A stretch of DNA of 64,000 nucleotides. Source: Bugula neritina. Its lineage: Eukaryota > Animalia > Bryozoa. Both the position numbers and the translations under genes were made by a program. This document shows positions 3,156 to 31,241 of the stretch, in pieces (position 1 is the first letter of the stretch; the number at the start of each line of letters is the position of its first letter). The stretch spans positions 835,751 through 899,750 of the forward strand of contig OZ037773.1 in the NCBI GenBank assembly GCA_964035545.1. Direction: 5' to 3'. The notes beneath the pieces are model-generated. The model did not search any database. It was not told the DNA's origin and saw only the letters and a program-made list of their open reading frames with translations.

Positions 3156-3391
3156 CTGTGCTGTGCTTGCGCGCTGTGCTTGCGCGCTGTGCTTGCGCGC
3201 TGTGCTTGCGCGCTGTGCTTGCGCGCTGTGCTTGCGCGCTGTGCTTGCGCGCTGTGCTTGCGCGCTGTGCTTGCGCGCTGTGCTTGCGCGCTGTGCTTGC
3301 GCGCTGTGCTTGCGCGCTGTGCTTGCGCGCTGTGCTTGCGCGCTGTGCTTGCGCGCTGTGCTTGCGCGCTGTGCTTGCGCGCTGTGCTTGT
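3156..3391. repeat. 13-bp GC-rich tandem repeat (GCTGTGCTTGCGC)n
   Basis: About 17 near-perfect units; explains the periodic ORFs at 3119-3462. Confidence 0.95.
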
Positions 3392-3702
3392 GTGAGTGCG
3401 TTTGTGAGTGCGTGAGTGTGATGACATTATATGTTTTATTGATGAAGGCATTTTCTATCTAATACAGGTAATGTCCACACAACTTAAACTATAGATGAAA
3501 ACTTTATGAGTACATCTAATTTTTCTATAATAGCACTCGTTTTCAGGTTTGCTATTATAGTTGGAGCTTTGACTTAAAAGCAGATGTAAGTTTGGGTAAT
3601 TCCGTCATTCTGATCAGCAGCAGGTGGGTGAACTCAACATTTCAATGATCTCAGGTTTAGCTCTTTCTCTGTAAATAAGCTACAGCTTTTATTAAAAACA
3701 AA

Positions 3703-3975
3703 ATTTGTGTCTCTCACTATGTTGGTGATATAGTTTGTACCTCTTACTATGTTGGTGAAGTAGTTTGTACCTCTCACTATGTTGGTGAAGTAGTTTGTAC
3801 CTCTCACTATGCTGGTGATATAGTTTGTACCTCTCACTATGTTGGTGATATGGTTTGTACCTCTCACTATGCTGGTGATATAGTTTGTGTCTCTCACTAT
3901 GTTGGTGATATAGTTTGTACTTCTCACTATGCTGGTGATATAGTTTGTGTCTCTCACTATGCTGGTGATATAGGT
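3703..3975. repeat. 30-bp minisatellite (CTCTCACTATG(C/T)TGGTGATATAGTTTGTAC)n
   Basis: About 9 contiguous units with no spacers. Confidence 0.95.
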
Positions 3976-4439
3976 TGAGAGCTTCACCGTGACACAGACA
4001 CATTTATATAGCATGATACATTGTTGACATTATCAATGGGAGAACTCAAACTCATGACTTGCAAAATACCAAGGGCCAGCTTTATAACTTGTAGACTAGT
4101 TACTCCTAAACTGGAGAAAGTCTTCACTTATAACAACTTGGAGGTTTTAGGAAAATGGGGCAGGATGATCTTTTTCAACTATTCTCTTGTTTTGCATATA
4201 TGCTGAATTTACGTAGTATTAAAAACAAAGCGATTGCAAAAATTGTTTAGTTTCTATTTTTCTCAATGCAACTTAATGAGTAAACTTATACTGCTAATAT
4301 TTCTCAATTATTAGTATCTGCTATAAGGTCTGTAAAACAAGTTCCTAGAGGTAGACTTTATGTTCACAGATTTGATGTTTCTTCAGCCCTCACTCATACA
4401 ACACCCTCTAATGACCAATATATGTATTTAGACAAATAG

Positions 4440-5812: not shown

Positions 5813-8800
5813 ATGATATTCCAAAATTCAAAATTTACAACTGCTTATATTGCTGTGCTAATTTTACTTATGAGGTAAGAATACTATCTGTAATCAGATA
5901 ATTTTAATTGTTTATAATTTGTTTACTTTTATTACATCAAGTTGAGCAAATAATAAATCTCTAAATCAAATTAAAGAGTAGAAGCTGAAACTTTGCTCTA
6001 CATTTGATGAGCGACTTTTGCCTACCATATATGTATCCATTTTGAAAGAAGCTTTTATATTAATGTATGTAATGTAAAGTTTGTATGGTTTCGTAATTTA
6101 TCAGAAATGGAAAACTGGGAGCAATCAATGCTGTTACAACTCACTCACACTCTCTCCAGCACCCAGTTTGTAAGGGGGCGATGCAGGTATGGTGTGCATT
6201 TCTACAGTAATTATAAGGACAATACATGCAGTGATATAACCAATATAAAGATAATAATTGGTTATAAAAATTGATACTTTATGGTTAAATTCATTCGATC
6301 TTTTGTCAAGCAGTTTTCAGCTCTTAAGCCGTGACATCTATAATAATGTTGTTAGTATGAGTCTAGTTCAACTCATTTAACATCTAAAATAATTGTCTAT
6401 ATCTTGCTAAGTTAACAGGCCGCAGCAATTACATAGCACATATACAGCTGGATCAATTTCAACCAAAGTATACTACTAAACAGAAACTTTAAAATGTCTT
6501 GAAGTGATTCCTTAAACCTACAAGTATTGAGTAATTGTTCGACTGAATTCAAGTGAAGATATTGTTTGTTAGAAATACTTTTGATTGTTCTTTGGTTTTC
6601 AGGTTGACGCTAACGACCAAGATTTCTTGCTGATAGGTATATGTCAAAGTGCTGGAGAAATAGCAAGAGTGCCAATAGCCAACTTGAGTCTTCCGCCAAC
6701 TGGTAAGAGTTTTGGTACACAGTTTAACTCATAATGTATAAAAGCTTCATCTGAAAAATGAAAGAAAGCAACTTTTGAAACTAAAATTCAAGTTGATTTG
6801 TTGCCTCGAGGTGCTACTCTTTTAGTGATTGCTGGTAACTCTTCGATGTCAAGTCCTACTCCTGGGACAAACTGGAATGGAGTTGGCACTTTAGCTGTTC
6901 TATCAAGTCCTCAACATTTTCATCAAACATCCTCTCAGCTTAGATTCATTGATGGGAATTCATGTGCTCGAATTCTAAATCGTCTTAACAACTCTGTGAT
7001 GACAGTAATAAAACATGGTGAGAGTAGTTATTAGGATGCTTTGCCATGTATTTGTAATAAATATGAAAAAAGAAGCTGTCAAGGCAAAGTAAAATAGTTT
7101 ATTAGTTAGCAGTTTCCATAATTTAGTATACCAGTAATGCTTTGTGTTTATTATTTGGATAGCTTTATTTAAATTGATGTGCATTAGATGTAAATTTTTA
7201 TATGCATATGTGTATATGTGAATGTTTATATGTATTACATAGATATTTAAAATACGGAGATAGTTATATGTAAAAGTGTATTTATAGGTATGTATATAAT
7301 GTAAATGGATGTGTATATATGTATGTGTGTATATATGGATATGTATATGCAGATCTGTGAAGTTGCATATAGATGTATTTGATTAAATTCTGATTAAAAG
7401 ATACGACCGGCTTTCGAACTGCTAGCCTTGCTTTTAACAAACGCCAATGTGCCATGCATCAGTTATTGATTACACAGATAGCTGTGATAAACCCAGACAA
7501 TCCGTATGTAGAAACTGAACTAAATCACTTTTCGAAACATCACACATCACATTTAATAGTGAAATATAATCATGTAGGAACCTGTGGAACTGAATCTCTT
7601 GGCATTCCAGGAACTATACCTGCTGTCACAGGTATGACTTACGACCTGGTGAACAGCACCTGGTACTTTGCAGTAAATATGATAAATGTAAGTTCCTTAC
7701 TTTTAGTTATGCATTTACCTACTCCACAACCCCTCTCTACTTTGTCCTTCTTTTTCACTTTAGCACAAAGAAAGTCTTGTGTGACCTTGACTCTTAAATA
7801 AATGAACACTTCACTGCCTCCTTTCTTATAGAACAAGGGTAGGCAACTTCTTTTGCTAGCAGGCTAAGTTCAGAAGTCAGCCAAAATGAATGGCCACATG
7901 GTTGTACACATATACCAAACCTATACTGTGCTAATCAGAATGAATATAACAGTTTTCATTTGTTTTAAGTATTTAAGGGGTCGCTGAAAAATAGGCAAAG
8001 GGCCACAGGTGGCCCTGGAGCTCCAGTTGCCCACCTCTATTATAGAGCGTTTCATAAGCTTTGGTTCAATAAATAGTAGGCTTTATGTTTAACGACCCAG
8101 TCTACAGTATTTGGGTCTACATTGCTGAGACACAGGAAACCTAGTAACAAAAAGTAATCAACAATTACCAGCTATTTTGGTGTAAACCTAACAACTGTCA
8201 AATATATCCCTAATGAGTTTGATTCCCCACCTCCTCATGCGAATTTTATATACTAACACTACTATATACTAACACTACTATATACTAACACTACTATATA
8301 TTTACAGTACTATATACTAACACTACTATATACTCTACACTACTATATACTAACACTAGTATATACTAACACTACTATATACTAACATTACTATATACTA
8401 ACACTAGTATATACTAACACTACTATATACTAACACTACTATATACTAACACTACTATATACTAACACTACTATATACTAACACTACTATATACTAACAC
8501 TACTATATACTAACACTACTATATACTAACACTACTATATACTAACACTACTATATACTAACTAATCAATGATGCTTCATTTTAGAGAGGATTGTACAAG
8601 TACCAAGATAATGTAGACATTGAACCTGTACTCATACTCTCCCTGAATACTAGTCAAAACATGTTCAGTCTGCTAGTTGACCCTCTCAGTTCAAATCATT
8701 CACTCATGTGGCAAAAGATTTCATATGGTTAGTCAAGTCTCTCAGTATAATCATGTTAATATTAGCTCTTATTAAATACTTGAACTAATATCAATATGCC

Positions 8801-10516
8801 ATGAATAGAGGCTGGTTCATTATATAACTGTTTTGTCACAGGTATTAGGAGATACAATCTTGATAATCTTGCATCGAGAAACCTTACAGCTGATGATTTT
8901 GTGACTTTCCTCAGGTACTGATTCTGATACTTTCTAGTGTGTCCGGTGAGGTGTAAACTTACCATCAGCTAAATACGCACAACATACACAAAACACACAA
9001 CACAAACATTACACGCAATAAACATATCAGCTGGTTTAATTGATTTAATACTTTTGTTGTCATACTCAGTGCACCTGGTACAGTTGGACCTCCTGATCCA
9101 GCAGCCTTGCGAGTAGAGAGCACTTCACTGGCTCTCAGCAATGACTCAGCTGGAATATCGTTGTCTCCGAGTAATTTACATCTTCTCATAGCTGATTACT
9201 CTACTAGTCAGCTGTTTCTCCTGGATGTTCTAACTCACAACCTGACTACTCAAGACATCGGTAAACATGTATTCTAATGTACCTTCCTCTACTGTTGGAG
9301 ATCAGGTATACATACTGTTAGTTGTTTGAGTAAAGAAGACATTTATTTTATTTGCTATCTAATAGTCACAAAGTATAGGCTTACAGATTCAGAGCAACTG
9401 AGTATATACGCTTATATAAACATTCAAATTTTTGACTACACACTTGAAGGCTCTTGGTGTTCATGTATAAACTTGTAGACACAAAGCATTTTGGTTTCGG
9501 CCTATAGACTCACAGCTTTTGAGTTCAGACATATAAACTCAGGGCGTTTGAGTGTAGGCGTTTAATTACTTGGGAACTTGAGTATAGGCTTACATCTAGA
9601 GTATAGGCTTACATCTAGAGTATAGGCTTACATCTAGAGTATAGGCTTACATCTAGAGTATAGGCTTACATCTAGAGTATAGGCTTACATCTAGAGTATA
9701 GGCTTACATCTAGAGTATAGGCTTACATCTAGAGTATAGGCTTACATCTAGAGTATAGGCTTACACCTAGAGTATAGGCTTACATCTTGAGTATAGGCTT
9801 ACATCTAGAGTATAGGCTTACACCTAGAGTATAGGCTTACATCTTGAGTATAGGCTTACATCTAGAGTATAGGCTTACACCTAGAGTATAGGCTTACATC
9901 TAGAGTATAGGCTCACATCTAGAGTTTAGGCTTACATCTAGAGTTTGGGCTTACATCTAGAGTATAGGTTTGACTGCTGATTGCAGACGAGCTGGAAGTG
10001 CTCTGCTCTTCTAGTTCCAGTGTTTGCAACACGTCTACTTTGACTGCTGCCAGTTGGATCAATGAGTCAAGCATTGCTTTTGCAACTCAAAATGAAATAT
10101 CATTAGGTGAGAAATACATTTGCTTTATATTATACTGCATCATACTCATATTATGTTTTATTATATTGCATTATGTACAAATTGTTCTGTAATCATACTA
10201 TATTGCAATATATTGTATTGTTTCTATGTTACATGTTGATATGTTTATTTTGTGTCTTATAATCGGTCATTATATTTAAATTGTCTTTTAGTTATATCAT
10301 ATTGTATTATATTACAATATATTCATATTATGTTTTATTACATTTATGTTACAGCTTATTAAAATATATCTAGATTATAATGCATTGTATTGTATCTAAG
10401 TATTATTGCATTCCGCTTATGCTTTCTTGTATTGTATAATTTAAATACTGCACTACAGTTTTATTTTTTCTGCTATATTGTATTTTATCTAAATTGCATC
10501 ATAAAAACTAACAAAA

Positions 10517-10596
<80 letters not shown>

Positions 10597-12277
10597 AAAT
10601 GAGTGTTTATAAAACGTTACTAGAGTGCTCTATAGAAATAAATCTAGAGCGTAAACATTAGAAGAAATAAAATGAGATTTGATTAATATAATGGCATTTA
10701 TTACTAGTAGTTTTGTACACAAGAACGATGTGCACTCGTCAGATAAATTAGCCACTATGATTGCTTACAACTATAAATGAAATTATACACAGATTAAAGC
10801 TAGAAGATCAAAATATAACAAAGAGGTAGCATTGTAATTAATTGGCTATGTTACAGCATTCTTGAGTAGAAATTTACTACTATGTCTGCATATGGATAAA
10901 AAGTCATAGCGCTTATTGAGGGAAGACAACTGTGGCTTATAAAGAATGAAAAATTTTTCCCATGAGCATAGCTGACAGATTTTAGTGTTGTTGTTGTATG
11001 GTTGAGCTTTTCTGAGAATTTTCCAGGATATGGTAAAATCCAGACCTTTGTCTTTTAAGGTCCAGATGTGTTTGCTCAACTCAGTTTGCATGCGCTTGGT
11101 TGGGTGTCTGAAAGAAGCAAGGTGGTTGTAGTATCTTGCCTTGAATGCAGTGGAGGAAATTCCTATATATGTTTCGGCAGTATCTTTTGATGGGACGGAT
11201 ACTTTGGCCTGGTACACAATGTTTGGGGTGGTGCATTCTCCTGGGAGCGGGCATGTCTTTACATTTCTACAGTTACAGCCTGCCTGTGATATAGGGGTGG
11301 TGTTGCATTTAGTAACACTTTTGTTGTGAGCAGTGATGGTCTGCTCTAAATTTGGGCAGCAACTGTAGCTGAGTTTGAGTGTGTTTTTATTAAATATTTT
11401 GTGCAGTGGGTGTTTGGTGTTGAATATATCTTTTATCAGCTTGAGGTATATGGAGCCGATTTTCGTCTTTACATTGCGGCTATAAGGTGGATTGTACCAG
11501 ATGACTTGTCTTTGTCTGATGGGTTTGATGCTTGTATTGGTGTTGTCAGTATAGTCTTTGTATTTGAGTTGGTAGTCATATCCGCTTTTAGCCAAAGCAT
11601 CTTGATATAGTGGGATGGCATTGTTGAAGATAGTTTCATTGGTAGATATGTCACAAAGTCTGCGGTTTATAGATTCTGGTATGTTATTCAGTATGCTGGG
11701 AGGATGGTTAGAGTCTTTGTGTACATACAGAGGGATGTTGTTGGGCTTGGAGTACGGTGTATGATGTTTCTTGACCAGATCTAGGGTGACGTCTAAATAG
11801 TCAGTTGTCTTGATATTAACATCTATGGTGATCTTTAGACCGTGTGACTGGAATAATATGCAAAGATCTTTTTTCAGTCTTTCAGCTAGTTGTGGTTTAA
11901 GATCTGTTACACCTAGCCCATCGTCTCTATATAGTCCAATGTTAGCTTTGAACTTTTTTGAGATTTTACTTAACAAAAATAATCCTACTAATTCACATGT
12001 TTCAGCACCATCATGTGAGCCCATAGTGACGTCAAACAAATTATCTGATTGTCTTTTACCCCAAAATGAGTTGTCATGCACCAATATGGATTTTTTTGTG
12101 TGCAATATGATATTCCGTTCGTGGTTGCTGACTGTAGTATGCAAGTTGGCAAAGTCGAGAGCATCAGATAGTAGCTTTGGCAATATAGATGGATAAAATT
12201 CCACAATATCGAACACGATAAAAGAGTGCCTGTTTGTGGTGGTCAAATTGTCAAACCAATGTAAAACTGCAGATGTG

Positions 12278-12346
<69 letters not shown>

Positions 12347-15300
12347 TACACTGTATTGGGTGAGAGAAAAAAGCTTGACATTTTAATATGTTCATTTTAC
12401 AGCTATGTAAATATTTAACAAATGATATATAACTAAACTGTAAGTTTGCTAGTTTATATAACTTTCATCATATTTAGTTTTTATGCAATTGCCGTAATCA
12501 ATAAAATCTAAAGCCATCTTTCCGACTAAAGCATGCTATATTGTAACTAGGAATAATTTCAAAGTCAGAGTTTATGATAATATAGTTTTTCAAGCATTAA
12601 TATAATATAACATTATGTCAGTGTGATTAATTTATAATATTCCTAATTTACAGTGTCTTTATCTCAAACTACCACGGCTACCACCACTACAGGTATAATA
12701 TATTGTATAGTTTTGTAATGTTATGTGTTCTAACTAGAAACTTAAGTTTATTAAATGATTCTAAGATGCTGAGCAGGTACTTAGAAAAGAGCTAAAAAAA
12801 AACTTACAAATTGCTTACATAACTTAAATTTCAATTAAAGATACTAAGGAGAAGAGGTTAATATTCAGCGAGTATATTTGTTATGCCATGGTATCAGTTT
12901 TACATAAGCCTCTAGACTGGCTGAAAAAACTGTCACCAACTTCCTTTTTTGTTGACAAGTCAAAAAAATGTATTGACCAGCTTTTGAAAATAAATTGCAT
13001 GCTAGACTTGAATCTTGTTTGATAACTATAGAAAATCAAACTGACCTGATTCTTTTATGTATACTTTTAGGACTGGGAACAGTCACTATCAGCGGCCCCC
13101 AGGAAGTTTATCTACACGGCACATCCCAACTAACCTGTCGCGCGTCTGGATTCACTAATCTCGCTCAGCTTAGTCTTCTGGCTGGTCCCAGCATGCAAGT
13201 AGTCGTTGGCTGTCAGATGTCAGCAGGGAATATGATTGGACCAGTTGCCCCAGTTAATGGTGCAGGAGTTGTTGTTGAGGGCATCACATCAAACCAGTGC
13301 AACACACTTTTCTCTTCTAGTGGCTTTTCTCTTCCGATAGATTTCACCATTGTAGACGCAAACATGATGGGACCCTTTATCTGCAGTGCATCTGTGTCTT
13401 CTAACTCTAGCCTGAATTCTAGTCCGTTGACTATCACTAGCTTCAAAAGTGAGTAGCTCATTTTTTCCCGCTCTTTCCCTGAAACTCATACTATATAATG
13501 ATAAAAATTCCAGCAGAGTTGAACGACATGTATGAAACATAACAATTGACAATGTAATGAAAGGGTGTTTGCTAACATTACATAAACACATCGCGTATAA
13601 TAAGTAAAATGAAAATTTAACATTCAAGCATACTCGAAAATCTTTTTCTAAAAAGTCTGGTGAAAGTAATTATATGAATGCCAATATAGTTTTTTTGAGC
13701 TGAAATTACATGGTGTAATCATTGCAAAGAATTGTAGAATAAGCTCTAAGCCAGGTAGTCCAATAATTTTAATATCAATGATGAGAGGTTGCTAGCATAC
13801 CTCTATTATATGGAATATAATTAAATATTTTTTTATATAATAATTATTGAAAATTAGAAAGCCAAGATTTTTATAAATATTTGCTCTACACATAAGCCAT
13901 ATCAGCATTTGAAGTTTTTACATGATATTATATAGTAACAATGTGATATAGTAAAAGTAGGCTAATAAGTAAAATAAATAAAAAGCAGTAACAATATAAT
14001 GTAGTAATGATGCAATATAGTAATATGATGTGGTATTGATGTATAACATGGTATAATAATACTATAATTTAGCAACAATATAAAACAGCCATGGTACATA
14101 CATATGTAATTGTAATGCATATAATATTATTGTAAGAATTTAGTATACAGTAATAATATTACAATATATAAGTAATAATATAAAATACCTATGATATATA
14201 GTAATACTATAGCATTAATATAGTAATAATATAAAAAACTCACACAAGTTTATAGTCGCTATCCCTGTGAGAAACCCCTGATGAAAAGGGTTTTTGCTAG
14301 AACGAGCTAAGGACTTGTTTAAATGAGGCACAGGAGCAATTATGACTGGATGCTCTTCCTAGCATCACCAATGGCCTTTGTCGGGGTTCGAACCCACAAC
14401 TTCGTGTTCACAAAGCAAACGCTTTAACCCCTAGACCACGAATATAGTAATAATATGACTTATTTAAAATAATTTAGATAATAGAGTAACATGACATAGT
14501 ATTATAGTATAAAATAGCCAGCTTTAGTTTAATCTGATCAACTCAAATAATATTTATGGTACGAGTTTTAATTTTAGATTACTTTCATTATTATAGATGA
14601 TCATTTTTTAGAAAGCAAATAGAATTTTGCTTACTATGATTTTTAGAGATTCTGATTGGTAATTCACTTGAATTCATAACTAAAGCTACCAAATAGAATT
14701 TCTAACAACTAGTTAATCTTCATCACTACTGCTGAAACGCAGAGCTTTATTTTTCAACTACGAAATTTTTTGATAAAATTGGAATTATTTATTCAAAACT
14801 TGTTTCAAAGGTGCTGACGTACACAGATGACTAACATGTTTGCTTTTCTCTTCAATATTCTTGTATTGATATGTGATGAAAATATCACATACATGTCCCC
14901 TGAAATGGGCTGCAAACTTAAAATTATTAACAACTAATCCTTTTACTTTGATTAGCACAATAGAACGTTTGGTTACTTTTCTAGATCCTGGGACCGTAGA
15001 TTTACTGACAGCTCTTTCAGGAAGTTTACCTGTGTATATTGGAGAAGTAGCAGGCTTTTCATGCTCTTCTTTGAGTTTCACTTCTCTGTCTCAACTATAC
15101 CTAAAGTTTGAGAGCTCAAGTGGAGATGTTGTTCTAAGTGGCTGTAATGGAACCAGTTCTAATCACCAGGGAAGTCCTAGTAGCTACGGAATTCCTGTTT
15201 TATCAGACAGTGAATGCGCAGGTGCCTTTAATCAACGGGGTTTCAGTATCCAGCTGGATGTTATAATAATGGAAAACCTGAGAAACGGTTCATTCTCCTG

Positions 15301-21300: not shown

Positions 21301-24300
21301 TGTTAAAGCAGGCCTTATTTAAATGAGGCACAGAAGCAACTTTGACTGGATGTTCTTCCAGACATCACCAATGGTCTTTGTCCAGGTTTAAACAAATGAC
21401 ATTGTGTTTACTAGGCTAACGCTCTAACTTCTAGACCACGACTGCTTCCTACATTCATATCATCTTATGATTAATCAAATTAATTTTTTAGCATATGGAA
21501 TACTTTCGCTCTCCCGGCTTTCTAACAACGAGTCTGTGTTCTACGTTCAAGTGCCAACTATTTTGACTTGCAATGCTGCCAACTTCACAAACCTTGGTCG
21601 CTTAGATTTGGTGTTCTACAACACATCATCCCAGGAGGTAGAGTTTAAAGGAGGGTGTACTATGGATGAATATGGTGTCTGGTCACCTAATAGAACCAGC
21701 TCTCTCTCTAATGATCTATACATTAGATCGAATACAGGAAACGGTTGTCTAATGGCTCATTCTGATTCGGCAGTCAACTTTACCATAACCCTGAGAAATC
21801 AGATATTGAAGGGCTATTTCTATTGTGAGGCTACAGACTTTGCCACTGGTGACACAGTGTATTCAAATAGCATTCATCCAACAATTATTATAGGTGCGTC
21901 GAGTAATATCTCTATAGTCTAGACTAAGCATAAGCGCTTAACGAACAACAAATCTTTTGATACTTCAACAAGAATTCCACACACATAAATTTGGTTCTAA
22001 TGCTTTCAAAGATAGCGCAAAGACTTACCATATAAAATGGACTTTTGTCTGTAAAACTAGAATAATTATGTGAAGTTTCTTTTTAAAATTTATTTAAAAA
22101 TGTCACACACAGTAGTAGTTGTCAGCAAAATTAAAACTTTACTGACAACTCTCATTTGTACAGTGTACAGTGGTATAAATTTGCTTTTAGTAAAATATAA
22201 TTTGCTAACAACAGCTTTGCAAAATTTATAGAATGAAAGACGTGCACTAATAAGAGTAAAAAGTTTAAATCAGTTATCAATTTTATTTATACACCAGCTA
22301 AAAAATAAGTGCAGAAGTAGTATGCTTTCAATGCTTCAAGGTCTTCAAGCATTCAAGGTTTAAAATTCTGACCGCATAAAACCTGCACCAAACAGCCCAG
22401 TTTTGTTGCAGTGAAAGGTTTTTGCTCTAACAGGCTTGCAATAGCTCAGGTCTTTTGACTTGAGACTTTTTGATAAAAAACACAGCAAGTATTTCAATAA
22501 TTTATTCAAGTATGTTTTTGCAGTGAATACATTATTAGGTACTTCTAAACAGTTTTTCACTGTTTTTCGGTTCCCTTTGTTGTTTTACATTGTAAAATGT
22601 ACTTTCCCATTTTGACAGACATTCAACGTTGTCAAAAATTTTTTTAGCTGATCTATGCTGGTAATGCAGAATTCTATATTTTTATTATCTTGATATTCAA
22701 TTATTGCAGAACCGACTATTTCTATCAATACAAGTTTGAATCTAAAAACTAACAGATATGTTGGAGAAGAAGTAGAATTTAGTTGCCATGCATCGGAGCT
22801 TCTTTCTCTCAATTCCGTGATCTTGGAATATAGAGAGCACAATTTCAACACATTTGTTGGATGTAAAAATGGTTACATTTATACTATCAACACCTCTAGC
22901 ATTACCCTACATGGGCCGGACAATCAAGATTGCCTGCCAACAAGCGACAATATCACAGAGTTCAATTTCACAGCAAAACTGAATGTTACTGCAGATTTGG
23001 TGAATGGGCGGTTTCAGTGTATTGGATATGACAGGGTTCACAGTCACCCTTTCTTCTCAAAAACAGTAGACTTCCACAGAATTGTTGGTTGGTCATAATA
23101 GATATATATGTATGCATGTAAACTTCTTTAAAGTTTTTTTTGTATTTTGCATTCCATGGGCTTTTTTAGGTAGCAGAATTTTTAGGTGTGGTAAAGGTAT
23201 TAGTTCAGGTTTATTCACAAAATTATGAACATCGACTTAGCTTTACTTGAGATATTGAAACTTATTTTGTTTATTCAGAACCTGAAGTGACTCAGATTTT
23301 GAGTAACCCTGAATTCTACCTAGATGAAGAGATCAATGTGACTTGTCAGGCTTCAGGGTTTCACACTTTACATGGTCTGATGTTAGTCTACAGAAATGCA
23401 ACCACCACTTTAGAAACTGGTTGTGTGGAAGGGGTTCAAGTACATGGAAATAAGACTGGTATACCAGACGCGGATTGTACAGATACATCAGCTGATCAAA
23501 GTCACTCAAGCTTTGTTGTAAGGTTCAAAGTTCACATGAACATGCTTAGTGCAACCCTGACCTGCCAAGCATTTGACAGCCATCTTGATCGACATGAGAG
23601 CAGCTTGATTACTATTATTGATCATATCAAAGGTTTGCAATAATTTAATTTACCAATGAAATGTGCAGCCTTTATCAAGGCTGTTTTAAAAATTAGCTGG
23701 CGAGTCTAGAACAAAAACCTAATATTAATGTTTTGATTACATTGATGAACTTATTTACAAAAAATCTTTAAATTTTTGAAAAATTAAACAGCAGTGATAT
23801 TGCAAAAGTTTCAGCCAAGAAGTAATAATGGCTTTATATTATGTACATGAGATATACTGTTGGTATAAATTGTGATAAAATTTATGACTCCAGGATGCTG
23901 TAAACCAAAACACACACAACAAGGTAGTAAGTAAAGTACCTACTTTACATTGCCCCATTGAACATTTCTCAATATTGTATTTTATAAACAGTAGCACTAT
24001 AACCCTGTTACCTGCAAAAATTAAAATGGTTATAGTGAGAAATTATAGTCTGTTTCTCTGTCTTATATAAAAAAAACATATTTTTGCTCAACTTGGTTAT
24101 TATTTAGAGTGACATTTTGAAGTGAGTTCAATATTGTGCAACCAGAAGATCTATGAAAATTACAAATCCTATAAATTCCAAAATCATTAGTAGCTTTAGT
24201 AACTGATCTTCTTAGATTTAGTCACCTAACCTAAAACCTATTTACCCAAAGTGGCGATAGTTGGTCATATCAGTAATTGGATGTAAATATGTTGTAGATC

Positions 24301-27300
24301 CTCCTGGGCCAATCAGTATGACTATTAATCCTTTTCCTATTGAAGAAGGTCAACCCTTTACGTTTGAGTGTGAATCAGATTCCAGTCCAAACTCTACTTT
24401 CTCCTATTGTAAGTGGCTCAATTTACTTAATCTAGTACACATCAGCAATTTATGACCAAAAATTCAAGGTTGTTCAAAATTAATGAAAATTTGCTATATG
24501 GGGTAACTTTATGTGCTGATTCTGAATATGCAAAGTAAAAAAGGCTAGAAGGGGGTTATGCAGCAGTAAAGCGCAACGTCGTCGTCATATGAGCGAAATT
24601 GCAGTTTATCTCAAATCACCATGCCTAACAATAAAGTTTGTTGAAATAACATTTTATTAGTTATTTCAGCATTAAAACTTAAGTCATGTTTGTTGATTAG
24701 CTAGAAGGGGGTCAACAGTCGTAATGACGCAACGTCATTACCTCTTAAAATAATTTAGCTGTCGTTATTATATTGCACATATTTTATCCTAAAGTTAAAC
24801 TTTTTATCTTGGGAAACTACTTCTACTGTTGGTGGGTGTGACTTTTTCAAAAAAATCTATGTGGAAACAGTTTTCTGTTATAACTGATGCTCAGTAATTG
24901 ATGCATCATCTGATAGAGTAGCTTGCCTGAACCTCACACTGCTTATATATTACTAGCGTATTAAAATTTAAGTGCCCAATTATGTAAGTTCATAAGTCAA
25001 CTGCAAATAAATAAATCAGAATGGTTTCTAACACTCATTTATTTTTGAAATAATAAAATACAAGCAACTTGTTTGCATAATTTCTTAGATTTTCAGTTTT
25101 TCAACTCTAGTATTGTGCCATTTCCCCACCACTCAATGAAGTAGACACTTGGTTCACCAGGAGTCCTATTATAACCACTAAACGAAACAATAAAACATAG
25201 TTATATACATACTATATACAAGTTATTATATACAATAAGTACACACATATATATATATACAAACTCCATCAGCCCTGCCCATGTAATTTAGAGACATTCC
25301 TGTAAAATAAATAGAAGCAGTTTAAATAAATGATTACATGCATTATGAACCAAACTGATTGATTTACAATGTTAATTTGCTCTAACTATAAAGATTAAAA
25401 GTGTAAGAGTAACTAACCCAAGCCTGGTCAAATTCAGCCCAGTACTCATCTGACTCCATGAAATCATCATGATCTGACTCTGTTTCAAAAACTTCAGGAT
25501 TTTTCCAAATAGTCTAAAATAAAAGAAAGCCAATTTTTTTGTATGTAAATTCAAGAATCTGAAAACTGCTTAGAATGGATATCTATGCCTATTATCTCAC
25601 GCCTCCATATTATCTCTATCTTGAACTTCAACCTGAGTCTTCTGAGTGTCATCTAGCTCACTTTCAGAGTCACTGAAGTCAACAGCTACCTAGAAAAATT
25701 AAATTTTTTCCATAGTTAAATGCAACCCTTAGATTAGGTGCAGTATTCATAGGCAATTTGTAAGTTCATTAACAGGAGAATAAATCAAATAAATTATTTT
25801 TCAGTCAAACAACAATTGTAAAGGAAGCAAGATCTTATAGTTACGAGACAAGTTTTTCAAACCGACAGGCATAGCTTCACACCTTGAACTCGATTCTTAG
25901 TCTGAGAGACAGCTGTTTAGATCTATTTTTAGTTTATCTGTTTAACTCAATTACTTATGTTTTAGCTGTACTCAGAGGAGATGTGACTATTACAGCCACT
26001 AACACTTACACTCCTGTGGTACTTGATAGACATAACTTACACATTATGTGTATTGATACATACCACATGCACTGGCAGGGAGGAAATACCTCTCTCACAA
26101 GACACATTTCAGCATATTGTAAGCCAACCCAACACTTATAATAGATGACATTTTGCAGTGTATAGTACACTACAAAGATGTTGATATATTGTATGTATTT
26201 AAAGACAGAAAAGTTTTATCAGCCAAGAAACAACTAAATATTTTGACATCAAACAAAAATCAGACTATAAATCATAAAAGCAAGTTTATAAATATAAAAA
26301 TGCTATCCTTTAGACTCTATAATAAACCTGTACACTTGAAAACAAATGTATTTGGAATAAATTACCAAACTCTTTCTTATATAGCTACATATGAATCTAC
26401 AGACGTGTCATTCGAGTTTAATTTATCGTGTTTTTTTAAAGCTCACATGATTGATATTCTAAACTGATCATATATTTGATTATATTTTTCTAGCTGATGC
26501 TGAAGTCAACATATCTTATGTATCCAATGGAGATCCAGCTTTCTACCTTAATGACACAACTACTCTAACTTGTTCAGCTTCAAGCTTTACTTATCTCCAT
26601 TCTATTCAGCTGCACTTTTCCGGCATGTCTAATAACTTTACGAGTAGATGTTCATACCATCATGGTGCCTGGCACGCTGAAAGTACCGTGACACAAATGG
26701 GAGAGTTTGATTTCTCTCCAGTTTTCACTGATAACCAATGTGAACACATAACCAACCACTCAAGTATGGTGAACATGGTTATCAGTGTAAAAAACAGTCT
26801 CAGTATAGAAAATGGTTCATTTGTTTGTTCAGCTCATGAGGGTCTTACAGGGGAACATCATGTAACTTCTTTGGCAATTCACTCATTACTTGGTAAGGAA
26901 TCAGTTATTAACCAAAAACACATTATTTTACTTTTGTGTAAAGTTGCTGTGTACGCATTGCATATGCAAATAGTGTCGTAATTTCAATGCTTCCATTTCT
27001 TGTTTCTAGTTCCTCCCATGTCTGAAGATGTGGATTTAATCATTGAGCCATGGCCTATAGTAGAGAATGCTCCATTCACAGTTACATGTTCAACTCCATC
27101 CAAGAGCGTAGCATTTGATTACAGTACGTGCTATCCCATTACTTATCTCTTGCCACTCTTGAAGCAGAGTTGCCACACAGACCTCGTAGCGCAGTTTTGA
27201 TTACCAGTAGTCTAAAAATTAGTTGTGTGCAGATTTCAAGCAAATTTCATACATGCAAAATGCTGAAGGACGAGTGCAGAAGGCTGGTGTAGAAATGCTC

Positions 27301-30077
27301 CAATTAGCTTCTCACCAATTAATAAGCAAATGCTTTGAGTTTCAATTTATGTTTATCATTTCTAGTGATTGGCTTATTCTCTCCTTATCTGCGTTTATAT
27401 CTATATCTGCATTAAAATAATCTTCAAAGCAAATGATGGTAGCAGTAAAGCTAAACACAAATATCATTAGCTAAAAAACTTGCGCACTACAGACAATGCA
27501 CTGTGTGTAATAGGTCATTCTCATAACAGATTTTCATACCCGTCTAATTTGCGACTTTATACGCTAAGCGGTGAAGTTGCGTTAAATTTAGTGTGCATAG
27601 ATATAAACATGCAATAACACACTTTAAGTATACTTAGCAGTTAGCTCTATGATTGTAATCAGACTACCTCAAATATAATTGCAGAATACTAATTGCTGTG
27701 TTCTGATGGGTTGATTCACGGCTATAGTTGGTGATGATTATTATCATTATCATTTTATTTGGATAAAATAATTCTGGGTAAAAAGTGTTTCATCCAAATA
27801 AAAAGCTGATTCTACAAATAATTATATCTTGTACCAGATTTTGAGTAACCCTGAGTTCTACCTAGATGAAGAGATTATTGTGATTTGTCAGGCTACAGGG
27901 TTTCACACTTTACATGGTCTGATGTTAGTCTACAGAAATGCAACCACCACTTTAGAAACTGGTTGTGTGGAAGATGTTTAAGTACATGGAAATATGACTG
28001 GTATATAATACTGTATTTAGAGTTGTAGTATTTGTAATTTTTTAGTGATAACAAATCAGAATGGCCAGAGTTTGAGCAGTAACAACACTTACACTCCTAC
28101 AAGTAGTGATGTCTCAGGAATTAGAGTAAGCTGTACTGATCAGAATCATCCTAACTGGAAACCTCATGCTAGAGTTCGAGTTGTTTCAACTACTTGTAAG
28201 TGTACAAATGATGACACGACATTTTAAAGATGACAGTAGGAAAACACTTATTAGGAAAACAGACAATTTACCAATAGAAAGCGCACAAATAGGCAATTAA
28301 AAAATGGCCATTTAAAAATATCATTTGAAAAATAAAAAAATATTCAACATGGACTAGTCTAAAGGGAGCATTCAGAATGTGGTTGAGTCCGAAATAGCTT
28401 TCAACAATAAATATGAAGCGTGAATTAGTTAGGCTTCTCGTGAAAGTAGAATTAGTTAACAAATATTTTCAATTTTAAATTGCACATGTTTACAAAAAGC
28501 TATTTTAGACCTGAACAGATGCTGAATGTTCCCTCTTGACTACTCCATGTTGAATTTTCTTCATTTTCCAACTGTTCTTTTCAAACGTCCATTTTCTGAT
28601 TGTCCATTTGCTAAGTGTCTATTTTCAAGTTGTCTATTAGTGAACCACCCGTTTTCCGAATAAGTGTTTTTGAATATTCATGAATTTGTACAAATAACTA
28701 GTCAGTTTATTAACTATCATCACCCAATTAGATTAAGTTAAACTTATTTGGGTGGGAAATTAAATTTCTATCAACTATTAATATACTTTTTCATTAGAAT
28801 TTTAGTAATTTTTTAATGAGTTATGTTATTGGCTCAGTAATTCTCAGGACATGCTGCTCTTTCATTTCTATTTGTATTTGAAACAATGATGTCACTAACT
28901 TATCTGAAAAGTATTTTTCTAATTTGTTTTGAATTTAGACAGGACATGTTGAAACATGGAACTATCAACTATATTCTAGTAAAGCAAAATGACATCTATA
29001 ACAACAGAAAATATATAATAACGCTAACAGATAAACCTTTCCTCATCACACACTGTTTCAATTCTTGTTCTGTCTTGTAATTTTAGCCAACGGAGTAATC
29101 CACATTTCTCACCACTCAGAATCACATCCTTACTTTTATGTCGGAATGGAGAACACAATTACCTGTTCAGCCAGTAACTTTACTAGTCTCAGTCAGTTGA
29201 ATCTAGTCTATGTTGATCAGTTAACCAGCTCTATTGTGTTCAACGCTGGCTGTGACATGGACGAACTTGGTGTCTGGTCCTCCAATAACACTGGACTTAT
29301 TGCGCTTAAACTGAATGTGCATTCAACTTCAGATAATGAATGTCAGTCAGGTGGTGAGCAGTTGATGGTTGATTTCACAGTAGAAGTCAAAACCCCTTAT
29401 CACGTTAACGGATATTTTTACTGCAAAGGCATTGAGAGTGCAACAAGTTCTGATATAGTCTCGGGGAATATTGAATTGAAAGATGTAAGAGGTGAGTATA
29501 TATTTAGTCAGTTTTATGTCTTATCGCTTCTCTTCAAATCTATAAGACCTATTAAAGTTTATTCTACAGAATCATTGCAAGATTAAATGGCATTTAAAAG
29601 TTATGTCTTGAGTACGAATATAAATTTTCAAAATGCTACTGTCCATTTTCTGTTTGCTTCAAAGCTGAAAAACTAAGTAAAGTAACTTGCTGATTATTTC
29701 AATTTTTTTGTCATATCTGTTTATAATTAGGATATTGTAGATAATTATGTTGTTTTGTACTTGCAGTGGCCCCAACAAGCCTGGTGATGTTTGTCGCTCC
29801 AGAACCTATTCAATATGTTAACCTGTCTGTTTCTTTCTCCTGTGAGACTCAGCCGCCAGAAGCTAAATCTGTCTTTATCTACGGTATACAAACATTATAT
29901 GACACCACACAAACATTTTATAACACCATACAAACATTATATGGCATAACACAAACATTATAGGACATCACACAAGCATTATATGATATAACACAAACAT
30001 TATATGGCACCACACAAACATTATATGACATAACACAAACATTATATGTATATGACATCACACAAGCTTGACATATA

Positions 30078-30159
<82 letters not shown>

Positions 30160-31241
30160 AAATAGTTGTAATTGCAGGTGTCTATGGTGGTGCAGGGACA
30201 AAGCTATCTTCTATCAATGCATACACACCAAGAAATACTGAATCCATAACTCTATATTGTATGGACACTACTCATCAGTTTTTGACTAACAACATGTACT
30301 TCAACGCTACCAGGATAATCTTTCCTTTAGGTGATTATGCTTTTTTTAATACAAAATATTCAGTATTGTCTAGATAAAGTTCTAAAGATGGTTTCAGACT
30401 GGTGTTTGCAAAAACACAATAAGTTACTTTTAATTTGCTAGTACTCTTGAAATACACATGCCACAAATTTTCAGACTAAAGACTACCAACATTTGATGTT
30501 TGCTGGTTTGTTTTTTCACATTACTTTAACATGCTAAGTTTGCAATCTTACAGCTTTTGTTTTTCTTTAGAGGCCCCATCAACAATTGCTCCACTAACCA
30601 CGGAGCTAATCACATTGCCACCACTTTCCAGAATCACACCTCCAGATAATAATAATTCAAGCTCTATGCTTACAAGTGGCACAACCACAACAGACATAAT
30701 CAAAGCCACTACCACAAAGACACTTAGTACCAGAACAGAAGAAGAGACAACAACACCAGATCTGGACTTCCCTGTTGAAGCAGACACACCGCAAGCAGAC
30801 GACAAGACTACCAATAAGTATACAGTTAAGTTTGTCACTTTCAAGGACGTTGACGATACACAAAAAGTCGTCAAAGTTGAACCTCCTCAAGGTGAGTAGA
30901 TTTTATTAAACTGGCCATTTTTCTCAATAACCATTGTCCTTGAAAATATTTTTTCAAAGCGATAATAATGTACCAGAAAAAGTAAAAACCCATTAAAGCT
31001 GAATGGCTTTTATTAAATTATGTATTTTTAACTTCCGATAGATTTTGTTGAGTCTTATATTTCCATCTATTTTATAGGTTATACTGCTGCCGCAAAAGCT
31101 GGTGTTGTGTTTGCTCTGATTGCCACTGGTCTGCTGCTCATTGTATCTCTCCTTCTGCTGACGAAGGTGGTGAAGGATCAACCGGTACCAAAGATTGACC
31201 CCAATATAGATTTTATTTACAACAAGCAGAGTGGTGCTTAG
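5813..31241 (+). CDS. Large multi-Ig-like type I membrane glycoprotein (signal peptide, probable beta-propeller, 10 long + 5 short Ig-like domains, mucin block, TM, short tail); 33 coding exons, about 2,457 aa
   Basis: Manually spliced exons, all GT-AG and phase-consistent: 5813-5874, 6105-6186, 6603-6702, 6826-7017, 7578-7687, 8586-8727, 8842-8914, 9070-9260, 9987-10106, 12654-12692, 13071-13448, 14985-15374, 15585-15959, 16907-17290, 17556-17669, 18135-18275, 19148-19768, 19999-20373, 20619-20732, 20995-21144, 21492-21893, 22710-23087, 23279-23632, 24298-24408, 25966-26118, 26494-26892, 27010-27123, 28046-28195, 29087-29491, 29767-29883, 30178-30330, 30571-30891, 31078-31241. The sum is 7374 nt, in frame. 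It starts MIFQNSKFTTAYIAVLILLMR and ends with TM AGVVFALIATGLLLIVSLLLL plus tail TKVVKDQPVPKIDPNIDFIYNKQSGA*. No transcript evidence is available. Confidence 0.85.
6105..10106 (+). CDS. N-terminal exons of the large gene: probable NHL-like beta-propeller region
   Basis: Spliced peptide has blade-like segments VIAGNSS, LRFIDGNSCARIL, GMTYDLVNSTWYFA, GISLSPSNLHLLIADYSTSQLFLLD. The fold assignment is inference from motif resemblance. Confidence 0.55.
7834..8039. mobile_element. hAT-type MITE
   Basis: Ends CAAGGGTAGGCAAC / GTTGCCCACCTCTA; flanking 8-mers TTATAGAA and TTATAGAG (7/8 match). Confidence 0.75.
8247..8562. repeat. 16-bp intronic minisatellite (TATACTAACACTACTA)n containing TACTAAC
   Basis: About 20 units, ending 23 nt before exon 8586. 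Confidence 0.95.
9578..9968. repeat. 19-bp intronic minisatellite (CTAGAGTATAGGCTTACAT)n
   Basis: About 20 units, with degenerate units upstream from about 9370; ends just before the acceptor of exon 9987. Confidence 0.95.
10594..12281 (-). mobile_element. 5'-truncated Penelope-like retroelement (RT + GIY-YIG endonuclease) inside a (TA)n tract in an intron of the large gene
   Basis: ORF 12246-10846 is uninterrupted: FDIVEFYPSI, MGSHDGAETCELVG, LYRDDGL (RT motifs), CNC..CPL, IVYQAK...TYIG...FKARYYNH (GIY-YIG); (TA)n on both sides (about 10518-10593 and 12282-12342). Confidence 0.95.
10688..10758 (-). ncRNA. Type I hammerhead ribozyme in the Penelope terminal repeat, core mutated (GAAA to AAAA)
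   Basis: Minus strand reads ATTTAT CTGACGA GTGCAC-N9-GTGTAC AAAA CTACTAG TA ATAAAT; differs from the intact copy at 48742-48812 at position 10714. Confidence 0.75.
13071..18275 (+). CDS. First Ig-like exon array of the large gene (long domains A-B-A'-B' plus one short domain split over two exons)
   Basis: ORF-track peptides 12995, 14873, 15560 and 16906 share Y-x-G-x(4-6)-C-x-[AS]-x2-F-x2-[LI]-x-QL, GC, C and G-x-F-x-C; every exon is symmetric phase 1. Confidence 0.85.
14252..14440 (-). mobile_element. tRNA-derived SINE
   Basis: Minus strand starts CGTGGTCTAGGGGTTAAAGCG (A box) ... GGTTCGAACCC (B box); related copies at 17852 and 21269. Confidence 0.8.
17852..18030 (-). mobile_element. tRNA-derived SINE, diverged copy
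   Basis: Colinear similarity to 14252-14440 (atagtc.ct...ctgtgaga, gcaattatgactg, gggtttgaac). Confidence 0.7.
19148..19768 (+). CDS. Mucin-like exon with (APPVTT/APPVTA)n, an 18-bp coding tandem repeat
   Basis: Open frame of about 30 GCACCACCAGTCACT(A/G)CA units; acceptor ttttag before 19148; probable donor GTCAGT at 19769; length 621 nt keeps phase 1. Confidence 0.85.
19999..30330 (+). CDS. Second Ig-like exon array of the large gene (6 long domains, 4 short two-exon domains)
   Basis: Long four-Cys exons at 19999, 21492, 22710, 23279, 26494 and 29087; short domains split as 20619/20995, 24298/25966, 27010/28046 and 29767/30178 (pattern P..F..C in the first half, YTP...C.D..H in the second). 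Confidence 0.85.
21269..21449 (-). mobile_element. tRNA-derived SINE, diverged copy
   Basis: Colinear similarity to 14252-14440 (atagtcgct, tttaaatgaggcacag, catcaccaatgg, ctagaccacg). Confidence 0.75.
27835..28005 (+). pseudogene. Intronic pseudo-exon: partial copy of Ig exon 23279-23632
   Basis: Closely matches 23293-23463, but CAA has become TAA at 27979-27981 and the 3' half of the domain is missing. Confidence 0.85.
28240..28670. mobile_element. Degenerate foldback/MITE with long inverted arms
   Basis: AAAACACTTATTAGGAAAAC ... ATTCAACATGGA ... AAATAGCTTT is mirrored by AAAGCTATTT ... TCCATGTTGAAT ... GTTTTCCGAATAAGTGTTTT. Confidence 0.65.
29886..30066. repeat. 21-bp minisatellite starting at a splice donor, followed by (TA)n at about 30081-30156
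   Basis: About 8 units of ACACAAACATTATATG(A/G)CA(C/T)N directly after the GT at 29884. Confidence 0.9.
30571..31241 (+). CDS. Ser/Thr-rich stalk exon (30571-30891) and TM plus cytoplasmic tail exon (31078-31241) of the large gene
   Basis: T-rich peptide in ORF 30531; last exon translates GYTAAAKAGVVFALIATGLLLIVSLLLLTKVVKDQPVPKIDPNIDFIYNKQSGA* with TAG at 31239-31241. Confidence 0.85.

Follow-up and report, generated by a model that had tools for sequence, protein, structure and literature searches.

Bugula neritina is a colonial bryozoan known for its bryostatin-producing symbiont. In a 64,000-nucleotide stretch of its genome (the window; all positions are counted from its first letter unless a contig is named), an earlier note made from the letters alone had described a receptor of unrecognised architecture, in which a propeller is followed by 15 atypical immunoglobulin (Ig)-like domains, an internal mucin segment and a transmembrane (TM) segment. 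This raised the question of whether the locus is a single gene, whether its repeated domains are Ig folds and what role such a protein could play. The literature that we searched contained no description of the family or of an architecture combining a propeller-like head, ten V-set-like (V) domains, five C2-like domains and an internal mucin, nor did it contain a paper on bryozoan recognition or immune-receptor molecules.

An open-frame listing combined with splice-site scans gave an open frame of 7,257 nt (2,418 codons) over the joined exons, running from the ATG at 5813 to the stop codon at 31239-31241. Both ends match those first proposed (5813 and 31241) exactly. The chain comprises 31 exons of consistent phase, with AG acceptors at all exons but the first and GT donors at all but the last (Table 1). 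The earlier note had counted 33 phase-consistent exons; the GT-AG, phase-consistent chain stood, but the count did not, and the discrepancy traces to the N-terminal head, whose exon boundaries are uncertain. The order of domains read from the chain (signal / head / A-B-A'-B'-s / mucin / C-s-D-C'-E-s-D''-s-D'-s / stalk / TM) reproduced the proposed one, and exon phase and the open frame point to a single gene rather than to several separate ones. From domain A onward, the exons are phase 1-1 without exception, so that skipping any one of these exons would preserve the frame, and the uniform phase-1 introns provide a concrete case of exon shuffling. A 19-residue hydrophobicity scan of the spliced protein detected a single strongly hydrophobic stretch above threshold, near the C terminus, and the predicted protein carries 55 N-glycosylation sequons. 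An Rfam search of the whole window returned no match, and Pfam gave no usable match for the ten long domains, the head, the stalk or the tail. We consider it likely that the locus is one gene of ~25.4 kb with at least 31 exons, which encodes a type I membrane glycoprotein of ~2,400 aa belonging to a bryozoan family of the Ig superfamily (IgSF) and acting by the mechanism proposed below. The gene lies at 841,563-866,991 of a 10.9-Mb contig (C9) that we take to be a B. neritina chromosome and that has a G+C content of about 33%.

Table 1. Exons of the predicted receptor gene, with positions in the window
Feature	Position	Strand	Remarks
Exon 1, start codon and signal-peptide-like N terminus	5813-5874	+	20 codons + 2 bases; donor GAG|gtaaga at 5874; hydrophobic core
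Head exon 2	6105-6186	+	Sole link from phase 2 into phase 0; codon usage scores as coding-like
Head exon 3	6603-6702	+	Acceptor and donor strong; phase 0 to 1
Head exon 4	6826-7017	+	Phase 1-1; coding-like; 6811 possible as start
Head exon 5	7560-7687	+	Start 7482 equally possible; single copy in genome
Head exon 6	8586-8727	+	Open frame; phase 0 to 1
Head exon 7, best propeller-blade candidate	9084-9260	+	Single copy in genome
Head exon 8	9987-10106	+	Donor TAG|gtgaga, phase 1, fits domain A acceptor
V-set-like Ig domain A	13071-13448	+	Phase 1-1 exon; four invariant Cys
V-set-like Ig domain B	14985-15374	+	Four-Cys exon; 65% identity to B'
V-set-like Ig domain A'	15585-15959	+	Modelled domain; V-domain top matches in Foldseek and VIA-align
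V-set-like Ig domain B'	16907-17290	+	Four-Cys exon
Short C2-like Ig domain s1	17556-17669 + 18135-18275	+	Homologous to domain 2 of Watersipora P0045
Mucin-like spacer exon	19148-19768	+	18-bp / 6-aa Pro-Thr-Ala-Val repeat
V-set-like Ig domain C	20008-20373	+	96% aa identity to the paralogue's C
Short domain s2	20619-20732 + 20995-21144	+	Two exons
V-set-like Ig domain D	21492-21893	+	Four-Cys exon
V-set-like Ig domain C'	22710-23087	+	Four-Cys exon
V-set-like Ig domain E	23279-23632	+	Four-Cys exon
Short domain s3	24298-24408 + 25966-26118	+	Two exons
V-set-like Ig domain D''	26494-26892	+	Four-Cys exon
Short domain s4	27010-27123 + 28046-28195	+	Two exons
V-set-like Ig domain D'	29087-29491	+	Four-Cys exon
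Short domain s5	29767-29883 + 30178-30330	+	Two exons
Membrane-proximal stalk exon, Thr/Pro-rich	30571-30891	+	Low complexity; no Pfam match
Last exon, with the TM segment, a cytoplasmic tail of 26 aa that includes the conserved motif PKIDPNIDFIYNK, and the stop codon	31078-31241	+	

The ten long domains (118 to 135 aa) share four invariant Cys residues and an invariant Tyr before the B strand, together with a near-invariant Gly before Cys2 and a near-invariant Phe two residues before Cys4; the four Cys residues are unchanged in all 33 aligned family members. None of the ten carries Trp in the C strand, where the columns are occupied by Leu, Met, Val or Ile and by Leu or Phe, and the Tyr-corner position (two before the F-strand Cys) is Phe in nearly all members. 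The features that had been listed for these domains, namely B- and F-strand Cys residues, Leu, Met or Val in place of the C-strand Trp and a second Cys pair, were confirmed. Pairwise identities supported the labels of the A/A' (40%), B/B' (65%) and C/C' (40%) pairs, while that of the D group (26 to 33%) is weakly supported. The Ig-family Pfam profiles (V-set, ig and I-set) did not match any of the ten domains even at E-values up to 1, and the Bugula orthologue of the paralogue described below reached, at best, the ig profile at E=0.039.

The fold was assessed on an AlphaFold model of domain A' (pLDDT, 95.6; pTM, 0.88), in which residues 3-7, 17-25, 30-37, 42-50, 53-57, 65-67, 83-92, 101-107 and 111-114 form the strands (A to G, including C' and C''). 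The top matches in Foldseek were antibody V domains and nanobodies (TM score, 0.6 to 0.68). In an unbiased VIA-align search of 48,161 representative PDB chains, IgSF-type domains filled all of the best 50 rows (Z, 9.2 to 10.5), with a T-cell receptor V domain as the best match (Z, 10.5; rmsd, 2.8 Å; 106 of 124 residues); the best structural matches were V domains, those of T-cell receptors, antibodies and nectin (Z about 10) among them, with rmsd values of 2.6 to 3.0 Å over 103 to 110 residues. In the model, the long domain adopts the two-sheet Greek-key Ig beta-sandwich in its V-set form, C' and C'' strands included, which is what the check on the fold had been meant to decide, and it keeps the canonical B-F Cys pair (the Cys23-Cys104 "pin"), Cys1 and Cys4 lying on the predicted strands B and F, respectively. 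The second Cys pair, with one residue in the C' strand and the other in the D-E helix, presumably forms a disulfide, given its invariance.

The five short domains had been proposed to be split over two exons each, and this was borne out: a phase-1 intron divides every one of them, leaving one Cys per exon. Profiles built from the short exons matched residues 170-231 of the Watersipora protein XP_067939839, whose model is all-beta with a pLDDT of 82 to 94 over the short-domain region. The V-C2 pair of this protein superposed on nectin-3 D1D2 (Z, 10.0; rmsd, 3.7 Å over 183 residues), on CEACAM1b (Z, 9.5; rmsd, 3.7 Å over 181 residues) and also on VCAM-1 D1D2. Judged by this Watersipora model, the short domain probably has a C2-type Ig fold and packs onto the V domain in the manner of nectin and CEACAM. 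The intron of s4 contains a truncated relic of an E-type exon (27802-27978).

For the head, which had been described as propeller-like, the signals stayed below threshold and came at the level of single exons, from two of them. Exon 7 matched Pfam NHL at E=0.17, below threshold, and was the only head exon to give NHL; among its listed named look-alikes by language model, those with a Pfam family were all NHL/YncE/lactonase propellers (0.91 to 0.92). Exon 5 showed weak language-model likeness (0.87 to 0.89) to the NHL, DUF6923 and DUF4394 propeller families. These weak signals suggest that the head, of ~330 to 360 aa, is probably a six-bladed beta-propeller of NHL/YncE type. Sema, PSI, IPT and integrin signatures were not detected by Pfam. 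Genome searches with head exons 5 and 7, the two that were used as queries, returned self-matches only, and on the basis of these single-copy exons the gene appears to be the only family member found with a head. Word-index protein searches of other data sets with head exon 7 and with domain A yielded no close relative. Upstream of domain A, neither homology to the signal exon of the paralogue nor a scan for ATG, hydrophobicity and donor site revealed another credible signal exon.

The mucin exon consists of 29.1 copies of the 18-bp unit (93% matches, no indels), and its tandem Pro/Thr/Ala/Val hexapeptide has the composition of a mucin-type spacer. The stalk exon displays no Cys pattern. When the 26-aa tail was inspected by eye for [SIVL]xYxx[IVL] and for paired YxxL/I, ITIM and ITAM patterns were absent, and the sole Tyr lies in F-I-Y-N-K-Q. 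The genome contains only three copies of the last exon, which belong to this gene, to its paralogue and to a small mucin gene at 33005-33187 on the minus strand. A PGAM5-like gene at 36.6-41.5 kb is among the flanking genes.

The paralogue is located at C9:810-835 kb, inverted and head-to-head with this gene. It shares the domain order, the mucin exon and the tail exon, and it starts from a signal exon of its own, with no head. Relative to the paralogue, dN/dS was 0.2 to 0.4 in all six long domains compared and 0.2 to 0.47 in five of six short-domain exons; the sixth, the second exon of s3 (s3b), gave 1.0. This comparison indicates that the exons, s3b excepted, are under purifying selection, and no positive selection between the paralogues was seen at the domain or half-domain scale. 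Together with the family profile E-values for the window's own exons (down to 1e-41), the dN/dS values place the exon and domain pattern far beyond chance. Divergence from the paralogue changes abruptly within exons: in D'', pN was 0.019 in the first half and 0.166 in the second, and in D', pS jumps from 0.07 to 0.72, which by sequence is the edge of a conversion tract. We propose that the two genes arose together, the paralogue without a propeller, and that gene conversion may still be passing sequence between their membrane-proximal halves, in patchy tracts.

Next, the range of the family was determined. A profile search detected at least 91 V-like exons in the same genome, most of them within the first 4.2 Mb of the chromosome that carries this gene, and a profile search of 1.84 billion representative proteins gave 71 matches. 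Twenty named matches were looked up, and the specific relatives among them all came from B. neritina or Watersipora subatra; the V-like family thus appears, as found so far, to be restricted to cheilostome bryozoans, and a known conserved orthologue did not emerge from these matches. Of the named matches looked up, the only animal proteins from outside the bryozoans were fish CD22/sialoadhesin/hemicentin-like proteins (E, 1e-12 to 1e-5), which aligned over short stretches around the B and F strands. These are likewise long Ig chains on a membrane anchor; however, they have the canonical Cys-Trp-Cys and neither a propeller nor an internal mucin, and they were ruled out as orthologues because they match via canonical Ig repeats and generic strand motifs. 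The combination of a four-Cys V-like domain with a split short domain recurs in Watersipora XP_067939839 and XP_067939872 and in Bugula KAF6036352 and KAF6030178, as well as in clusters on the chromosome of this gene. The Watersipora members are small, comprising a V domain, a C2 domain, one canonical Ig domain, a TM segment and a Tyr-rich tail, and the gene described here is one of the largest in the family. The predicted fold, the one-gene reading and the bryozoan-only specific relatives support the proposal of the earlier note that the locus represents a lineage-specific, sequence-atypical IgSF branch.

A ligand-binding beta-propeller head on a beta-sandwich stalk with a single membrane span is known from Ig/IPT receptors (semaphorin/plexin/MET), integrin alpha and the NHL-propeller surface protein teneurin. 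The likeness is one of concept only; the head here measures ~330 aa, carries NHL/YncE-like hints and is single copy by the two exons searched. Nectin, CEACAM, VCAM and SYG-1, adhesion molecules of vertebrate and invertebrate IgSF, are likewise type I membrane proteins, and the V-C2 pairs of the first three superpose on the Watersipora homologue model; the isolated long domain matched the V domains of nectin-3 D1, TIGIT, CD8 and MPZ at Z 9 to 10. However, identity in these domain-level matches was 6 to 17% with no Pfam match, and in place of two to five domains the present protein has fifteen, with no C-strand Trp, an extra Cys pair, a mucin spacer and a non-Ig head. Comparison with the Hydractinia Alr proteins, which the earlier note had offered as a conceptual likeness and not as homology, stands as such. 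Alr proteins function in allorecognition, as has been demonstrated, and combine one to three Ig domains with an Fn3-like fold in which six Cys residues are invariant; their V-set domain 1 lacks both pin cysteines, the Tyr-corner Tyr can be replaced by Phe, and the core Trp can be replaced by a hydrophobic residue (Huene et al. 2022, PMC9546547). Both families are lineage restricted and clustered, with V-set-like domains that are missed by profiles and recognised via structure prediction, and both show the Tyr-corner Phe and a hydrophobic residue for the core Trp. In contrast to Alr, the pin cysteines are invariant here, and there is no membrane-proximal Fn3-like six-Cys fold. The bryozoan-restricted branch provides a fold-level record of an IgSF lineage that kept the disulfide, lost the "invariant" Trp and gained a second Cys pair, and it adds to the Alr case in indicating that, outside chordates, a large share of V-set domains goes uncounted by sequence profiles.

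From the architecture, we infer that the role of the protein is most likely adhesion or recognition. The rod, long and heavily glycosylated (by its sequons and two mucin segments), would lift the head, with its probable propeller, and the outermost V domains off the cell, and these, far above the surface, would bind ligands carried by other cells or by microbes. The tail, which is short, conserved and common to two neighbouring genes, could serve in sorting or in the binding of a shared adaptor rather than in direct signalling. The cluster, the inverted pair and the conversion mosaics are candidates for kin/self or host-microbe recognition in bryozoans.

It is possible, though we hold it doubtful, that the locus gives rise to at least two products, a short secreted or lipid-anchored propeller protein and exon-skipped Ig isoforms, among which the 2,418-aa form would be one isoform at most. 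Reading through the exon-8 donor would add 28 more codons, including a hydrophobic stretch that resembles a GPI signal or membrane tail, before a stop at 10190; however, this stretch consists of simple, AT-rich sequence in which every frame is open, and the donor itself fits the consensus well (5 of 6 positions) and has the correct phase. The phase 1-1 structure of all later exons would permit skipping, and KAF6030178, a paralogue model from the Virginia draft, joins the signal exon straight to the mucin exon and skips four V-like exons, although this model was predicted automatically from a draft contig. The single-copy head, absent from the paralogue, would be a separable module; on the other hand, the acceptor of domain A is an AG in phase 1, and the head is the only credible upstream source of a signal.

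An unlikely reading is that the adhesion or recognition role proposed above is that of an immune pattern-recognition or symbiont-management receptor, whose V-like domains or propeller bind microbial surfaces and whose family expanded and diversified for this task. The family is large, clustered and fast-diverging, propellers of the NHL/YncE type are often ligand binders, and the Watersipora members have tyrosine-rich cytoplasmic tails, one of which, as read from the sequence, shows ITAM-like YxxL-x9-YxxL spacing. Against this, the tail of the gene studied here has no ITAM or ITIM, and dN/dS relative to the paralogue indicates no pervasive positive selection.

That the protein is instead a polymorphic self- or kin-recognition determinant of histocompatibility type, bound in trans by its own allele as in Hydractinia Alr1/Alr2, seems improbable. 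The clustering of the IgSF family on one chromosome arm and the mosaic gene conversion between neighbours are consistent with it. Paralogue fragments from another B. neritina individual were 83 to 94% identical in protein, a figure uncorrected for genome-wide divergence between the two animals, and B. neritina is a complex of cryptic species (PMC10078279). The same paper reports kin-biased larval settlement in one B. neritina population (Keough 1984, via PMC10078279), and it also reports that kin recognition failed to reproduce in other populations. The V domains of Alr lack the Cys pair that is kept here, which leaves no argument from homology. As a long shot, the first 4 Mb of the chromosome could constitute a bryozoan histocompatibility-type complex, with this gene and its paralogue as polymorphic self/kin determinants. 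If so, V-domain-based allorecognition would have been invented independently in a third colonial animal phylum, and membrane-proximal exons would be shuffled by conversion while the outer domains stay old and different.

Finally, a locus that is not a working gene, whether duplicated Ig exons in decay, a pseudogene or an artefact of assembly, could account for the relic in the s4 intron and for a retroelement open reading frame (without a Pfam family, and perhaps Penelope-like) in the 3-kb intron before domain A, but this is hardly credible for a chain in which 31 of 31 exons are open, the splice sites are intact, the only stop is terminal, dN/dS stays at 0.2 to 0.47 outside s3b and the four Cys residues are invariant in 10 of 10 long domains.

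A chain of 31 exons was reconstructed on the + strand from stop-to-stop frames and splice-site scans, running from an ATG at 5813 to a stop at 31239-31241. AG...GT was found at every internal exon boundary, and the joined reading frame was open across 7,257 nt (2,418 codons). The domain order proposed in an earlier note (A-B-A'-B'-s, mucin, C-s-D-C'-E-s-D''-s-D'-s, stalk, TM; letters, ten long V-like domains; s, five short domains) was recovered in this chain. That note had claimed 33 exons; we counted 31, with uncertainty confined to the N-terminal head (exons 2-8), where two starts are possible for exon 4 (6811, 6826) and for exon 5 (7482, 7560). A second signal exon was looked for upstream of domain A and none was found, and exon 8 ends at 10106 in a strong donor that matches domain A in phase, so that one predicted gene at 5813-31241 is the simplest reading. 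It is possible, although unlikely, that the locus makes several products, by a read-through end past exon 8 or by exon skipping in frame; phase 1-1 was found for all exons from domain A to the end. As a single gene, the locus would encode a product with one strongly hydrophobic stretch, near the C terminus (19-residue hydropathy scan), and 55 N-glycosylation sequons (local computation). The s4 intron also holds a truncated E-type exon, left over from the segmental duplications by which the array arose.

The ten long-domain exons (118-135 aa) shared four invariant Cys and one invariant Tyr in their alignment; a Gly preceding Cys2 and a Phe two positions ahead of Cys4 were near-invariant, and the C-strand Trp was present in none of the ten. 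The four Cys remained invariant in a wider alignment that took in 23 further, paralogous exons of this genome. With this alignment as input, the AlphaFold model of domain A' (pLDDT 95.6, pTM 0.88) was a sandwich of nine strands, C' and C'' among them, and a single short helix lay between D and E. Foldseek against the PDB returned antibody V domains and nanobodies (TM 0.6-0.68, E ~1e-4). In an independent structural alignment against 48,161 representative chains, all 50 matches listed contained an IgSF-type domain, among them TCR, scFv, nectin, CD8, TIGIT, and MPZ V domains (Z 9.2-10.5, rmsd 2.6-3.0 Å over ~105 of 124 residues). The structure prediction suggested in the earlier note thus yielded an Ig beta-sandwich matched best by V domains, and the view of the long domains as atypical Ig-like held. 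Pfam recognized none of the ten; the predicted V-set fold and the B-F Cys pair were found, and the V-set Trp, Tyr corner, and profile match were not. As modeled, the long domain is a V-set-type Ig fold. Because the second Cys pair is invariant, it presumably forms a second disulfide from the C' strand to the D-E helix. Each short domain was confirmed to be spread over two exons by a phase-1 intron, with one Cys in each half. Their fold was read through a natural full-length relative, Watersipora subatra XP_067939839, whose residues 170-196 and 198-231 are matched by profiles of the short-domain halves. In its model, the V-like domain (pLDDT ~88) and the adjoining domain (82-94) superposed on nectin-3 D1D2 (Z 10.0, rmsd 3.7 Å, 183 residues), and the pair resembles the two-domain IgSF ectodomains of nectin-3 (D1D2), CEACAM1, and VCAM-1. 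By homology to this modeled protein, the short domains are predicted C2-type Ig domains.

The head (~330-360 aa) matched no Pfam family, the sole signal being an NHL repeat in exon 7 (E=0.17), and no second copies of its exons 5 and 7 were found in the genome. Language-model look-alikes of exon 7, among those listed with a Pfam family, were NHL/YncE/lactonase propellers (0.91-0.92), those of exon 5 belonged to NHL/DUF6923/DUF4394 families (0.87-0.89), and a blade-like motif (hydrophobic run-Asp/Asn) was seen by eye in each head exon. A six-bladed propeller is a rather probable lead for this region. An 18-bp unit repeated 29 times makes up the mucin exon, the stalk exon is rich in Thr and Pro, and the 26-aa cytoplasmic tail carries the motif PKIDPNIDFIYNK and neither an ITIM nor an ITAM. 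The tail exon occurs three times in the genome: in the giant gene, in its inverted paralogue, and in a small convergent mucin gene, whose tail repeats PKIDPNIDFIYNK; therefore, the exon appears to have been copied onto an unrelated ectodomain.

Features in and beside the window (window positions unless prefixed C9, contig OZ037773.1)
Feature	Position	Strand	Description
Inverted paralogue	C9:810194-834984	-	Head-to-head, directly upstream of window; eleven V-like exons
Shared tract	19206-21200		92% DNA identity to paralogue, introns included
Shared tract	24219-26896		87-93% DNA identity to paralogue
Two short tracts			97% DNA identity to paralogue
N-terminal halves			Giant gene and paralogue not alignable
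Truncated E-type exon	27802-27978	+	First half of V-like exon, stop-ended
Small convergent mucin gene	33005-34697	-	370-aa Pro/Thr mucin exon 33576-34688; membrane-span/tail exon 33005-33187
Histidine-phosphatase gene	36668-41465	-	Multi-exon; His_Phos_1 in one exon, E=0.0013
Retroelement-like ORF	10846-12246	-	466 aa; in 3-kb intron preceding domain A
Partial second copy of that ORF	50241-50564	-	C-terminal part
G+C-rich blocks	51.7-55.9 kb, 58.8-64.0 kb		53-57% G+C
Two minisatellite arrays	3119-4014		Several frames open

The paralogue shares its mucin and tail exons with the giant gene, has a separate signal exon, and lacks a head. Identity between the two is a mosaic (87-97% of DNA) limited to the membrane-proximal half. 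Between copies, dN/dS was 0.2-0.4 in the six long domains compared and 0.2-0.47 in five of six short-domain exons; therefore, apart from s3b (1.0), both copies are constrained. The analysis showed the giant gene to be constrained and intact; its predicted product is a glycosylated type I membrane protein of great length, built of V- and C2-type Ig domains. Divergence between copies leaps within single exons, from 0.07 to 0.72 at synonymous sites in D' and from 0.02 to 0.17 at nonsynonymous sites in D''; the jumps are the footprint of gene-conversion tracts with ends inside exons. KAF6030178 and KAF6036352 were rejected as orthologues of the giant gene; they are orthologous to the paralogue, to which they are 83-94% identical, an uncalibrated figure. 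B. neritina is a cryptic-species complex (PMC10078279).

At least 91 exons matched the ten-domain profile in the same genome, most at 0-4.2 Mb of C9 and a few on contigs C1, C2, and C4. Elsewhere on C9, V exons alternate with pairs of short-domain half-exons, in a pattern that repeats about every 2 kb. Eight V-like matches lie only ~500 bp apart at C9:3157900-3161741 (-), so that other family members also appear to have V-like exon runs. Among 1.84 billion representative proteins, a profile search gave just 71 matches at E<=1e-3, and identity was looked up for 20. The specific named relatives among these 20 were B. neritina KAF6030178 and KAF6036352 and three W. subatra proteins; 11 were unnamed short ORFs or contigs from metagenome and read-archive assemblies, and four were IgSF proteins of fish (three with CD22-, sialoadhesin-, or hemicentin-like names and one unnamed) that match via short motifs of the B and F strands. 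The searches of this genome and of the databases agree on a large, apparently bryozoan-restricted family. Pfam found only the third, canonical Ig domain in the Watersipora proteins. XP_067939872 and XP_067939839 are small proteins that combine V-like, C2-like, and canonical Ig domains with a cytoplasmic tail rich in Tyr; one of the two has an ITAM-reminiscent YxxL-x9-YxxL spacing. Our literature search found no paper describing the family; the Bugula draft-genome paper reported only weak similarities to Alr1 (PMC7576161). The suggestion of a lineage-specific IgSF branch gained support from the bryozoan named relatives and the predicted V-set fold. These data support an undescribed, lineage-restricted branch whose V domain is atypical and whose layout, a probable propeller plus 15 Ig domains plus mucin, is unusual.

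The protein may act as a rod whose mucin hinge and stalk would present the head and outer V domains for trans binding, and the short conserved tail could serve sorting or adaptor binding. A putative role in adhesion or recognition, in the broad sense, is somewhat favored; within it, immune or symbiont recognition is doubtful, and allorecognition improbable. The giant gene offers a way in to bryozoan recognition biology.

The window (C9:835,751-899,750; C9, 10.88 Mb) belongs to an assembly of 216,009,554 bases, and the published B. neritina assembly comprises 216.00 Mb in 9 chromosomal pseudomolecules (PMC11480708). The window is AT-rich (~33% G+C) except for two retrotransposon blocks (~55% G+C) past ~52 kb, in striking contrast to the 33% of the host genome; the blocks contain Gypsy-type gag (zinc knuckle), reverse transcriptase, and integrase ORFs. 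Pfam gave no family for the retroelement-like ORF before domain A, which looks Penelope-like; its partial second copy lies near 50.3 kb. The histidine-phosphatase gene looks PGAM5-like from its WDYNWD and RHG motifs and would be a useful single-copy neighbor against which to calibrate divergence. The minisatellite units can be read as ARKHSAQAQRAST and NYITSIVRGT, and the arrays are probably noncoding.
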